Of a stretch of 64,000 nt of DNA, positions 23,850 to 28,262 are shown piece by piece (position 1 is the stretch's first letter; every line of letters starts with the position of its first letter). The notes beneath the pieces are model-generated. The model was not told where the DNA came from, searched no databases, and saw only the letters and a list, made by a program, of their open reading frames with translations. The position numbers and the translations under genes are program-made. The DNA comes from Tetramitus jugosus (Eukaryota; Protista; Heterolobosea), in NCBI GenBank assembly GCA_937625935.1, contig OW569359.1, forward strand, positions 124,001-188,000. Reading direction: 5' to 3'.

Positions 23850-24045
23850 GTGATAGAATGATATGGGCCGAGATTGAGACTCCAATGAAACGCGTTTGTT
23901 GTTGGTTTGCAAAGCAACGAATAAACAACTCCTTCCAGCATCATCTGAATCCTCTCCGACAGAAGAATGGTGTCCGAAGTTCAGAAAAAACCTCAGACTC
24001 ACTATTTAACTTCATTCATCAAAACTCAAAATCAAACAAACCATA

Positions 24046-24640
24046 ATGGAAGATTAGAAAACTTGTTCAGTACGGAGACTCACTAATTGTGTTTGGTTCC
24101 GGGATTTGGAAAATTAATGTGAAGACTCTTCATGAGCAGTGCTTAAGTAATGAATGTTGGAACGGAACATTGGGTATACCATGCAGCCGGAAAGGGATGA
24201 CTACCAAAGCGTTATTCACCATTGACAATACCATTTTCGTCATTTGTCAAAGGTTTGGTCATTCTCCCCAGATACCGTTAATGAATATCTGTGCGTGAAT
24301 CATGAAGATTGGGGATCAACCATCCCAACCGCTTTGATTCCATTGATTGGTAGCAACAAGTACCTTGAGCAACGGTAGTTCAGTTCAACTTTCATCTGAC
24401 AATTGGCACTCAACCAGAGCAATTGTTTATTTAGCACTTTGAGTGATGGCTGTTCTGTAACCAATAATGAGGATTGGACCAATACTTGTTGTACATTGCG
24501 AGTAACAACAAGGTTTGGGTTCTCAATCCTGTTACAGGAAAGTACGAGAGTGCAAGAACCGAATCCTCTTGGACTTAAAAAGAGAGAACGAACGTCTCCG
24601 AGCTGAGCTTGAAGAGAAGAACAACCAAATGGACAAGGGT
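24046..24640 (+). pseudogene. Decayed repeat (beta-propeller-like) gene fragments flanking the transposon
   Basis: Recurring motif LSNECWNGT / VNHEDWGST / TNNEDWTNT in different frames, separated by stops and frameshifts. Confidence 0.4.
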
Positions 24641-24644
24641 TTAA

Positions 24645-24659
24645 GGATGTAGTTCGGTG
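24645..24659 (+). repeat. Left terminal inverted repeat
   Basis: GGATGTAGTTCGGTG, reverse complement of 28169-28183 with 1 mismatch. Confidence 0.88.
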
Positions 24660-24758
24660 AAATAAAACCCATAATAAAAAAATTATGATTTCCCGAGAAG
24701 ACACCTTAACGCTCCTACATAATCGGGACTTACATAGCAGCTTGATGGAGTGAGCCTT
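24645..24758 (-). ncRNA. Putative Fanzor omegaRNA scaffold (3' part)
   Basis: Lies between the truncated Fanzor ORF and the element end. Stem TCCCGA/TCGGGA, hairpin CATAAT/ATTATG, and loop ATGTAG complementary to terminal CTACAT (pseudoknot). Confidence 0.55.
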
Positions 24759-26295
24759 GGAGGTGTTCCACCATTTTGATTAATTCTTTTGCGACCAAAA
24801 CCAGCATTGTCCATCCCAATTAACATGGTTCTTCCATTTGCTCTCTTTCGAAAGTCATTCATAACATTGGCAATCGTCTTATCTCTCATTATATAGCTAT
24901 CCCAATTCAGTCTCTTCACCCCAACAAATCATCCTCGACTTTCAATACAGAATTGATGTGTTCAAGGAACAGACCACTTGTTGGTACACCGGCCTGTTTG
25001 ATTGAGTTTTGGAGTTCATCCAAGTTCTTCTCATTCATTTCGTTCCATTCTGCTTTGTATTTCAACAATCGCTTGGAGTTTTTCGAATGGTGGGACAGAT
25101 GTCTATATGTTTTGTTAGACAACTCCCACTTCTTGCCATCTGAATCAACACAACTCACCAACGTAACAATACCCGGGTCAATCCCAACCAAATATTCAGC
25201 ACCTTCGTTCATACTTGTTTCCTTCTTTCTCTTCTTTGCTTCTTTCTGGTCCTTGGATTCCTTTGCCTTATTGTTCTTGTGATTGCCAACGAGTTGATGT
25301 CTGAGAACAACAGAGGCCTGAATACCGTCAGTTCTGATTGAGTCGATTTGAATCTTCTTTGTTCCAACATTCAAACACTTGAGATTACACTTCAATTCAG
25401 TTGACTCCTCGCCCTTCTTTTGTCTTCCTTGTTTCTTCTGTTTAAGCATATCAACTAATTCCTTTGTGCCAATCTCCATACACCTGCACTTGAAATGAGA
25501 CAAAGGAAGTAGTGCAAACGATTTCATATCATTGTTGATCAGAAATTGTTGAACATGCCAGTAAAACTTCAGCATGTTATTGGTGTTGTTCTTCACAAAT
25601 GATTCATCAATTACTTCATCAGTTTTAGCATCAACAAGTGTTCGAACCTCTCGGATCAACACAGGAATCGTCTCTATCAACTCTTTTGGAGGCAATTTGA
25701 TAAAATCGTGGACAGGAGTGCTAAATGTCAACCTTCTGATAATGTATTCAACAACCCTTCTTTGTTCTGACTTTGGAATAGATGAGTCACTGTGTAGTTG
25801 ATTCATTCTGACCCTCAGATACTTCCTCAGTCTTGGTTCCAATGTGAACTTGAGCATGTTGGAGATGTTGACATTGAGAGACCTGGCAACATAATTGATG
25901 GACGTGGCAAAACTCTGATAAATCTTTCTGAGTTTGACTACTACATCGTCCATGTTGACAGACTCGTTGATGAGACTTAAGTTATTGTCTCTTGGTTTTG
26001 AATTGCGTCCAAACAACACAGAACCTAATCTTTGAAGAAACACTTGATCTAATAAAGGGATTTGATAGTCAGACTCCAAGTGCCTCAAAACGAATATGTT
26101 TATAAATCTTGTGAGTCGAAGAGCAATCCTTGTAATCTCCAGAGCTTGAGTCTGTATGATTGGTAACAGAGTTGGATGATGCAACAACAGAGACTTCAGA
26201 CCGACCTTGACCACGTAATGTGATGAGTATTCATTTTTTTTGACAGTCTCTCTCTTTCTCTTTCTCTTGCCGTCCTTCGGCACGCCTCGTGGCAT
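24683..26295 (-). pseudogene. Fanzor1 (eukaryotic TnpB-family RNA-guided nuclease), frameshifted and C-terminally deleted
   Basis: N-terminal NLS-like KRKRKR; VVKVGLKSLL; FALLPL; IRTDGIQASVVL; RuvC-I YLVGIDPGIVTLVS. After a frameshift at about 24918: KRLNWDSYIMRDKTIANVMN...LIGMDNAGFG...GGTPP. No downstream DE..TS/CxxC/RD segment in any frame. Confidence 0.85.
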
Positions 26296-26302
26296 AATGT
26301 TA

Positions 26303-26348
26303 TTGTATTTGTTGTGTGTTGTATTTGTTGTGTTGTATTTGTTGTGTG
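26303..26348 (+). repeat. 3x tandem TTGTATTTGTTGTG(TG) immediately upstream of the Fanzor ATG
   Basis: Units at 26303-26318, 26319-26332 and 26333-26348. Confidence 0.85.
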
Positions 26349-26629
26349 AGTTGAATCAAACAGCGAAAAAGACAGCGCTTTTTAAACCGAGGAAGATGGC
26401 CGTTGCCGTTGTAAAGACAGTCTCAACGGAAATTTTTACAACTGCGCCAATTCCGCAGCTTAGAGGAAACTGATACAACATTTATTGTATTTTTTTAAAA
26501 TATATCCACCTATCTATCCAATCTTGAACCAACGAAAAACTTTCTCTCTGACACGACAACAACAACAACGAAAAACACAAGTCGCACAACGAACATCAAC
26601 AACAACAACGACCAAATCAATCAAAAAAG

Positions 26630-26735
26630 ATGGAGAGTCGACAAGAGGTGTCTTTTTGCAGCATTTGATCTCTGGTGTTGGCAAGTTGTTGAGTGCTGAG
26701 AGAGCGAGTCTGTTCCTCTTGTTGAGTGAAGAAGT
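26630..26735 (+). pseudogene. Captured 5' gene fragment with a GAF-like segment
   Basis: CAA-rich leader, ATG at 26630, then out-of-frame FLQHLISGVGKLLSAERASLFLL resembling the first helix and strand of GAF domains. Confidence 0.45.
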
Positions 26736-26745
26736 TTATTCTCTA

Positions 26746-27495
26746 TTAAATAGCAATCTCGGCATACTTTTCAGAATCACTCCTCTTCTTGGATCTCAAA
26801 TAGTTGATAGTGTTGCGATAGAAGACATTGGTTGGTGCAAAGACATCATCAGGAGTCTCCTCTTCTTCAATCTTTGAGATATTGTCAGCGATTAGATCAA
26901 TGAGACCGTTAATGTACTCGGCAGTCACCTTGTCATTGTCCTTGTCAAAGTGATAAGCGTACACGTTCAAAATGTCAACAAACAATGGAATTTGTTGTGC
27001 AGGCATGCATGCCTTGACAATCTTCAACGACCATTGCAAGCATTCAAGTGCCTTTGAACTGTTCTGAAGCTCTTCGTTATTCACGAACGGCCAGAACAGA
27101 TGAGAGCAAGTGAAGCCAGCTCTGCACTGATCAGGCTTCCTCAATAGCTTGGATGAGTATTGGCAGGTCTTTGTGGACAATGTGTCATAGTTTTCGCATC
27201 TCACAATGCTCAGTGCAATAAACTTTCTCTGTTCATATCCAAGAGAATGAATAATATCACCATACTTCTCCAACTTCAAAACTGTTAGCACATTGTTGTA
27301 TGACTCGAGTGGCACCAACAACAATCGCTTCAACATCTCTACAATTTCATCTGAAGCAAGTGCAGTGCTATTCAATTGACTAGCAATGTTATTAATAATC
27401 TTGTTGACATAGTCAGTGTTATCAGGATATGTTTGAAGAGCAAGTGTCATCAATGAGATCTGAATACTCAAGTTATCGGACAATTCAACACCTCT
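26746..27495 (-). pseudogene. VPS35: Captured VPS35 (retromer) fragment with an internal in-frame deletion
   Basis: SIQISLMTLALQTYPDNTDYVNKII, LLLVPLESYNNVLTVLKLEKY and TKTCQYSSKLLRKPDQCRAGFTCSHLFW are VPS35 motifs. The N-terminal ~300 aa are absent, as are roughly 200 aa between ALSIVRC and ENYDTL. Confidence 0.85.
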
Positions 27496-27613
27496 CTAAT
27501 GGTATCAATAGGACAGAATTTGACAAACGTCAGAAAACTCACACTCATCAGGTCACTCGCATTCACGATGTCCTTCAGAGTGTTTGTTTTCTGTTTTTTG
27601 CAAGTTTTTTTTG

Positions 27614-27955
27614 ATGAAAAAAATCAATGAACAAATGGGAAAACAAGGAAAAGGCGCCAAAAGAAGACATAACCAACACCAACAATTGGTAAAGTTTGGA
27701 GTCAAAAGAAAAGTAAGAATAACCGATATACATATTGATTTATTTGTGTATCTAGTTGGTTCGTTCCTTGGTGTAGAAGATGTGTTGAATTTGGTATTGA
27801 CGTGTCGGGATTTTCGATCTTCGATAGTCAATAATCTATCAACAATAAGGTCTTATATGGACAATTTGTACTCACACTGTTTGGCCGTTTGCAAGTCAGG
27901 CTTACCGTGCAAATTGCAAAGGAAATTTTTTGTGCCTGTTTTGATTGCTTGTTGA
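27614..27955 (+). pseudogene. F-box-like ORF fragment inside the transposon
   Basis: ITDIHIDLFVYLVGSFLGVEDVLNLVLTCRDFR fits the F-box pattern; no substrate-binding domain follows. Confidence 0.5.
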
Positions 27956-28168
27956 ATCAACCAGTACTTGACCGCATCCTGGGCAGAACCATGAGGCAGT
28001 GTTCATTATAATACTCTTGGCTGAGACGGAACCACAGCCGGAACAGAACCATTGATGAGATGTGGCAACCATGATCGTAAGCTTGTGTTTGTGATTGGGT
28101 GTCGTGCACCTGTTTTTTTGGGCAGTCTGGAAAATTTATAGGTAGAGTTCTATTTATACGTTGAGGTC

Positions 28169-28183
28169 CAACGAACTACATCC
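28169..28183 (-). repeat. Right terminal inverted repeat
   Basis: CAACGAACTACATCC followed by TTAA. Confidence 0.88.
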
Positions 28184-28262
28184 TTAAAAATAGTCGGTGG
28201 TTTGCACTCATTGAATAAAATACAATCAACAGTTGTTATTTTCATGTTTACAAACAAAAAAC

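Follow-up and report, generated by a model that had tools for sequence, protein, structure and literature searches.

The window analysed here is a stretch of 64,000 nt from Tetramitus jugosus (contig OW569359.1, positions 124,001 to 188,000), and the subject of this report is an element next to MED23 within it: a non-autonomous DNA transposon of 3.55 kb, flanked by TTAA duplications and with 12-bp ends of the form GG...CC, which carries a broken gene for the nuclease Fanzor1. A sequence-only reading of the window had pointed to a 17-bp inverted repeat at 24640-24656 / 28172-28188 and resolved it into TTAA target-site duplications (TSDs) and GG...CC terminal inverted repeats (TIRs). The repeat lies at these positions and consists of TTAA and a 12-bp perfect TIR, GGATGTAGTTCG, the 17th base being flank. 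The further statement, that it brackets exactly the non-housekeeping interval between MED23 and a lipase gene, does not hold: VPS35 cargo lies inside, and ~790 bp with a decayed open reading frame (ORF) separate the MED23 stop codon (23849) from the element. This ORF (24040-24640) is frameshifted, and its coiled-coil-like last stretch enters the TTAA site. The features of the element are as follows (positions in the window; TAM, target-adjacent motif; UTR, untranslated region).

24621..24640, minus strand: predicted guide, the host flank read after CC-TTAA, with a length inferred from known Fanzor1 guides (PMC10432273, PMC13565253)
24641..24644: TTAA TSD at the Fanzor-3′ end, also the predicted last 4 nt of the omega-RNA scaffold; one TTAA restores host ORFs at sister loci
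24641..24742, minus strand: predicted omega-RNA scaffold, intact in the window copy (fold prediction, z −3.4)
24645..24656: 3′ TIR, type A, 12 bp, perfect, with GG...CC termini; the same end is found on a 40%-identical Fanzor (L129/L131)
24730..26295, minus strand: Fanzor1 pseudogene with the RuvC-I Asp kept; intact sisters have 637-642 aa
26296..26473, minus strand: upstream segment common to all subfamilies by sister comparison, likely the Fanzor promoter and 5′ UTR
26745..27532, minus strand: captured VPS35 fragments, matched to the native gene on C22
27584..27955, plus strand: further captured cargo, common to A and B′ copies, in which PF12937 gives a weak F-box-like signal that is below cut-off (E 0.034)
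28153..28160, minus strand: subterminal motif CGTATAAA, shared by the 5′ ends of every TIR type (A, B, B′; 18 matches vs 1 control match)
28172..28183: 5′ TIR, type A, from the inverted repeat and its genome-wide recurrence
28184..28187: TTAA TSD on the 5′ side, predicted to be the TAM of the empty site; the run X6 joint (24644 to 28184) falls here

The genome searched comprises 26.35 Mb in 56 pieces, from which 20 sister loci were read and 16 complete copies compared. The 16-mer of the TIR end occurs 21 times in it against one control match, which rules out chance as the source of the inverted repeat in the window, and a DNA search with the element returned 106 matches at ~35 loci, with boundaries and TTAA TSD recurring genome-wide. 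TTAA stands on both sides, between unrelated flanks, in 15 of the 16 complete copies; the 16th has TTGG at its 3′ side. Three end types occur in the family, A (GGATGTAGTTCG), B (GGTGGCGGTCTAC) and B′, all of which start with GG and have CGTATAAA near the 5′ end, a candidate transposase binding site or promoter. Copy sizes range from 2.55 kb to 4.6 kb and identity between sisters reaches 99%; the family is young, recently spread and multi-copy. The earlier claim of a TTAA TSD with RR...YY termini (R, purine; Y, pyrimidine) was borne out by these copies, and that a multi-copy TTAA element carries Fanzor1 we regard as practically certain.

The TTAA is a true duplication and not part of the element, because three host ORFs interrupted by insertions (L030, 146+152 aa; L034, 291+106 aa; L039, 98+251 aa) are continuous across the rebuilt empty site only with one TTAA. 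A TA-duplicating Mariner was rejected as the identity of the element. At L031, L033 and L037 the TAA stop codon of the host gene forms part of the TTAA at the 5′ junction, and the gene is left intact. The empty site that the sequence-only reading had proposed to look for exists: a groundwater-sample contig from an independent run (X6) joins the two flanks of the window element and skips exactly GG..CC, from 24644 to 28184. In the decayed ORF beside it, the X6 strain differs at 52 gap positions.

Relatives were also found outside the genome. One (L042) is a 2.17-kb type-B element with a 75%-identical Fanzor on a gene-dense, virus-like metagenome contig, another (L044) has the same ends on a Fanzor 59% identical, and two more (L129, L131) have the type-A end on a Fanzor 40% identical; the GG...CC termini of types A, B and B′ are shared by L042, L044 and L129. 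The flanks of L042 are mismatched (TCAA/TTAA), as is known of piggyBac at non-canonical sites, a point in favour of the piggyBac mobiliser discussed below. Compared in this way, type-A copies, the window's included, look like mosaics of a B-type body and the ends of the L129/L131 lineage. A subtelomeric mini-element of 2.18 kb (C32:2808-4989), which has type-A ends and whose diverged Fanzor is in two pieces, probably belongs to that lineage, which was also seen together with its 3′ flank in run X12 (RNA). The sample of L042 further contains 61-62% identical Fanzors in which no TIRs were detected, on gene-dense giant-virus-like contigs (L041:2437-4521, L043:1631-3862), and these suggest host-virus exchange.

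The Fanzor1-type ORF of the sequence-only reading is Fanzor1 by the residues of its sisters and by structure model, and in the window copy it is a pseudogene. Two deletions, one of 19 bp near 24920 that shifts the frame and one of 325 bp at 24793-24796 with microhomology of 4 bp, take out the zinc finger together with the Glu of RuvC-II and the Asp of RuvC-III; the first Asp (RuvC-I) alone survives. Intact sisters (637-642 aa) have the complete RuvC D-E-D triad, D373, E536 and D587, with the Glu just upstream of the zinc finger (7 residues ahead of C543). About 19 full-length, stop-free Fanzor1 ORFs are found among the sisters, and the ratio of nonsynonymous to synonymous substitution rates among diverged copies, which are mosaics of one another, is 0.12-0.19; as read from these sequences, the sister genes are under purifying selection. 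The only solved-structure match by sequence (phmmer) is SpuFz1 (E 4e-13). The predicted model (pLDDT 91.6) reaches template-modelling (TM) scores of 0.61-0.71 to SpuFz1, PpFz1 and GtFz1, against 0.24 to mimivirus Fanzor2 and TnpB, and modelled fold and sequence are thus both nearer to Fanzor1 than to Fanzor2/TnpB. L128:509-3424 encodes a Fanzor1 of 971 aa that is extended at the N-terminus by a long basic stretch, HMG-box-like at its start by eye.

The same fold is predicted for the last ~100 nt of five diverged copies (z −2.8 to −6.1): first a short hairpin, then a long stem, which GUUAAGG closes by pairing with the CCUUAA at the terminus. The pairing with CC+TTAA is kept in the predicted fold down to 40% protein identity, and the last 156 bp of the window copy are 100% identical to intact sisters; the flank at the predicted guide position is different in each copy. 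Since the 3′ TSD belongs to the Fanzor1 RNA scaffold (PMC13565253), a fold ending in CCUUAA agrees with what is known and gives TTAA as the predicted TAM of the family, which is also the TAM of GtFz1. The intact sisters would perform RNA-guided, TAM-dependent cleavage. The window copy is nuclease-dead, and because its ends and omega-RNA are kept it could still be moved and supply a guide to its sisters in trans.

The window element holds ~1.7 kb of cargo, including VPS35 fragments (PF03635, E 6e-51). Positions 26745-27197 (452 bp) match the native gene's 3′ end (C22:84173-84625) with 100% identity, which points to recent capture, and 27195-27532 are 97% identical to a middle part of it (C22:83229-83572). 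Native VPS35 is intact at C22:82.0-84.5 kb, and its fragments occur at ~19 element loci. Host gene fragments thus lie inside TIRs with the intact gene elsewhere, the pattern by which Pack-TYPE elements are recognised, and the cargo is always 5′ of the Fanzor gene. The 5′ cargo of L039 and L040 includes a stretch like a PRP6 HAT-repeat fragment (by eye) and a ~135-bp tandem duplication.

What moves the family was approached through its termini and through profile searches. A TTAA TSD with RR...YY termini is the signature of Kolobok, which is known in Naegleria (PMC9587614); the family has both the TTAA-specific 4-bp TSD and 5′-RR...YY-3′ termini. Judged by its termini, its mobiliser is probably a Kolobok transposase, and the family is to be filed as Kolobok-like, not as a member of Kolobok. 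Kolobok is defined by a DDE transposase with a C/DxxH signature, and none was found linked to the ends. Genome searches with PF20700 and THAP profiles gave no match, but their controls were blank too; none of the genome matches to PF13843, PF21787 and PF10551 lies near A, B or B′ ends, and PF25273 gave one weak fragment. No transposase-bearing element came out of the Fanzor-alignment scans of metagenomes and viruses. Sola3 has a TTAA TSD, GAG (or CAG) termini and usually long TIRs, and membership in it was rejected on termini of GGA/GGT and TIRs of 12-13 bp.

A piggyBac transposase that accepts unusual GG...CC ends would move the same element with its Fanzor. The genome encodes several long piggyBac-type ORFs (PF13843; open frames of 582-968 aa), and piggyBac is TTAA-specific and already listed as a Fanzor host in Repbase (PMC13565253). 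Its termini are contrasted with RR..YY (PMC9587614), though, and no A, B or B′ end lies near a piggyBac gene, nor does a piggyBac transposase lie between the same TIRs. All ends of the family start with GG, whereas piggyBac termini begin with CC/YY. Taken together, this makes a piggyBac mobiliser unlikely. Long open piggyBac-type frames lie at C34:198515, C18:150044, C30:266267, C18:38735 and C39:393561, two pairs of them with identical scores, and P-like transposase frames of 951 and 1118 aa at C8:636185 and C11:180469.

We rate as equally improbable that an unclassified TTAA/TTAN transposase, perhaps virus-borne and absent from the assembly, moves the family, as with the Fanzor1 elements of insect viruses. 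Transposase-less elements of ~1.95 kb with 13-bp TIRs and TTAA/TTAN TSDs (HAmv-1, HAgv-1, PUgv-1, SFav-1, HVav-1) were listed in 2013 with their superfamily unassigned (PMC3627910), and L042 is a type-B element in a virus-like contig; the likeness to the insect-virus elements covers size, TIR length, TSD and the lack of a transposase, and against this reading Kolobok is the one superfamily named with TTAA and RR..YY in the literature searched. These elements and piggyBac-Fanzor also narrow the novelty that the sequence-only reading saw in a Kolobok-Fanzor partnership: the literature searched contains no link between Kolobok and Fanzor, and Kolobok is not among published Fanzor hosts, but a TTAA target with a Fanzor passenger had been recorded before.

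Copies without a 5′ TIR retain the exact CC-TTAA 3′ end, and retroposition was discarded as their origin on these exact ends and the lack of poly-A. At L038 and L029 the 5′ junction consists of TTAA followed by the opening stretch of the copy's own 3′ flank, 12 nt at L038 and 9 nt at L029, and a 33-bp remnant at L039 has TTAA plus ~16 nt, imperfect and with small deletions. Runs of at least 9 nt arise in at most 2 of 100,000 random TTAA pairs (2e-5 per site pair). Fanzor loci with a 3′ end only number 12 against 2 with a 5′ end only (p 0.006), an excess that 5′ TIR types not recognised may inflate, which counts among the objections gathered below. Fanzor1 cuts at 14-21 nt (PMC10432273); such scars and 3′ bias are what a cut 14-21 nt past the TAM, trimming, one-sided copying from the filled allele and end joining would leave. 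The upstream host flank of L029 (197 bp), followed by the TTAA+9-nt junction, recurs at 91% identity inside the complete B′ elements L039 and L040. The scarred copy was thus probably used as a template, copying ran on beyond it into host DNA, and a new round of transposition followed once a 5′ TIR had been regained, so that this locus probably donated its flank to a later subfamily. Fanzor-initiated homing is, in our judgement, likely behind the scars, and the idea of RNA-guided transposon maintenance in the sequence-only reading draws indirect support from them and from the 3′ bias.

The explanation that we favour, and hold to be probable, is that a TTAA-specific DDE transposase acting in trans, most likely Kolobok, moves a non-autonomous family with a 3′ Fanzor1 cassette of the OMEGA type (short for obligate mobile element-guided activity). 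Read-through past the 3′ TIR would yield an omega-RNA with the flank as its guide and a scaffold ending in CC+TTAA. Once a site is emptied, its TTAA would serve as the TAM and Fanzor would cut ~14-21 nt downstream of it; the element would then be restored by repair on the filled chromatid or homolog. Should only the downstream end be copied before repair aborts, a 5′-truncated copy bracketed by TTAA and the first 9-16 nt of the guide would result, and later gap repair through such a TIR-less copy into host DNA, with the 5′ TIR regained, may have produced the cargo-laden subfamilies. The full combination, a first Kolobok-Fanzor1 system with a scaffold co-adapted to CC+TTAA, homing footprints (TAM-plus-guide duplications, 3′-biased copies) and homing-driven capture of host fragments, is put forward tentatively.

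Several observations weigh against this explanation. The search for a full-length copy turned up ~19 intact sister Fanzor1 genes and no DDE transposase, nor any other transposase gene within or between these ends, in the copies examined. The X6 joint leaves one or two TTAA, the table being compatible with either. RNAalifold on a MAFFT alignment misaligned the stems and did not recover the conserved fold, which therefore stays a prediction. An exact guide repeat of at least 9 nt is found in only 2 of the 5 larger 5′-truncated copies; at L026, L028 and L130 TTAA lies 2-6 nt from the junction with 0-1 matching nt. At 9 and 12 nt, the retained lengths fall short of the published cut positions, and the explanation has to assume that ends were trimmed.

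The missing autonomous partner would suit a scheme with no transposase, in which Fanzor and host repair carry the element to new sites. It seems hardly credible: unlinked insertions with exact ends and a 4-bp TTAA duplication are products of DDE integration, and no guide against a new site exists until the element has inserted there. More serious, if doubtful in our view, is the proposal that duplications and 3′ bias stem from one-ended transposition or from aborted repair of transposase-made gaps, Fanzor being a passenger kept for other reasons. Plain excision-gap repair explains the three truncated copies with just TTAA and a few filler bases, and TTAA+n would likewise be duplicated if DDE attack took place at one end and a second break fell at random. 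Excision-gap repair alone, however, cannot place 9-12 nt from the far flank on the near side without a further cut downstream in the resealed site, and it predicts neither 3′ bias and purifying selection nor an RNA scaffold pairing with CC+TTAA across lineages 40-60% identical.

Beyond the complete copies, a 319-bp miniature (C8:461447-461765) and unpaired ends (C10:247203, C24:126331, C25:365156, C32:442476, C47:28099, C47:119538, C15:15258, C8:617477) are candidates for guide-only loci or further aborted-repair remnants; relaxed TIR searches found no inverted partner for the lone ends. Type-B copies hold the end of another ~1.7-kb element (L034:4665-4900; C14:514049-515791, C28:86541-88272, C45:332440-332820), whose terminus resembles those of pogo/Mariner. 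An internal match of the type-B 5′ region proved to be the end of this other element, and searches with the element 5′ ends matched no long Fanzor-free element. Also set aside were the repeated motif TTAAGGTCATCTCG as a TIR (it is unpaired), an odd 5′ end at C39:12541 as a further end type (single-copy, with no repeat at its 3′ side) and TIR patterns in viral contigs (a single match per contig, taken as chance).

According to a 2026 review, restorative homing has been demonstrated for TnpB/IscB of bacteria, with Fanzor not among the systems listed. The culturable amoeba studied here would allow a direct test of what Fanzor does in its own genome: intact nucleases number ~19, the TAM is predicted by a fixed 4-bp target, the empty site is polymorphic, a second haplotype is deposited, and the duplications of truncated copies predict the cut position. 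A Kolobok pairing, if true, would add one host superfamily to the ~10 known, by itself a modest advance; it is plausible and incremental, and follow-up is warranted more by the scars and the capture trail. At 637 aa, and with a compact predicted RNA and a predicted TTAA TAM, the Fanzor1 of the family is also a plausible editing candidate, though GtFz1 shares this TAM.

Among known systems, the Spu-1 / SpuFz1 element of Spizellomyces punctatus (PMC10432273, PMC3627910) is similar as a transposase-less TIR element with one ~630-aa Fanzor1 ORF, an RNA at the 3′ inverted repeat and many intact and broken copies, and SpuFz1 is the closest solved structure (TM 0.71). It differs in its TA TSD and 33-bp TIR, where the window family has TTAA, 12-13-bp GG...CC TIRs, swappable end types and host-gene cargo, and the two Fanzor1 proteins are only ~19% identical. 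Elements of the HAmv-1 type (PMC3627910) share the TTAA/TTAN TSD, a 13-bp TIR, a size of ~2 kb and the lack of a transposase; their TSD is a relaxed TTAN and no cargo is reported for them, whereas the window family has nearly always TTAA. Kolobok (PMC9587614; T2-MITE/XKol, PMC6004289) is alike in TTAA TSD, RR...YY termini and short TIRs, and its lineages often have accessory nucleases (KolobokP, E, D), none of them RNA-guided in the literature searched; Xenopus ends start with AG and those of the window family, known without a transposase, with GG. The piggyBac-Fanzor pairing of Repbase (PMC13565253) has the TTAA target and Fanzor passenger in common with the window family, whose GG...CC termini differ. 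Pack-TYPE and Pack-MULE elements (PMC8903248) are likewise non-autonomous TIR elements with host gene fragments; the window family differs in that it has a protist host, one traceable donor locus and cargo all 5′ of a retained Fanzor cassette.

For homing, the nearest parallel is TnpB in IS605/IS607 (PMC13565253), with a 3′-flank guide, a TAM identical to the target and an empty site that is cut and refilled, as would be the case here. Those experiments were made in bacteria only, whereas the window family has a eukaryotic DDE-type host and its homing is proposed from genomic scars. The Fanzor Helitrons CRe-1/2/3 of Chlamydomonas (PMC3627910; 10.1101/2022.12.15.520654) also include 5′-truncated Fanzor1 elements with variable duplications of 7-19 bp and an overabundance of 3′ ends. 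Their duplications were unexplained in 2013 (PMC3627910), and a role of Fanzor was tentatively suggested later (10.1101/2022.12.15.520654). Because the host there is a Helitron, the duplication is tied to no fixed TSD or TAM, whereas that of the window family starts exactly at TTAA and runs into the guide; if homing is true here, the variable duplications of the Chlamydomonas elements would be explained too.

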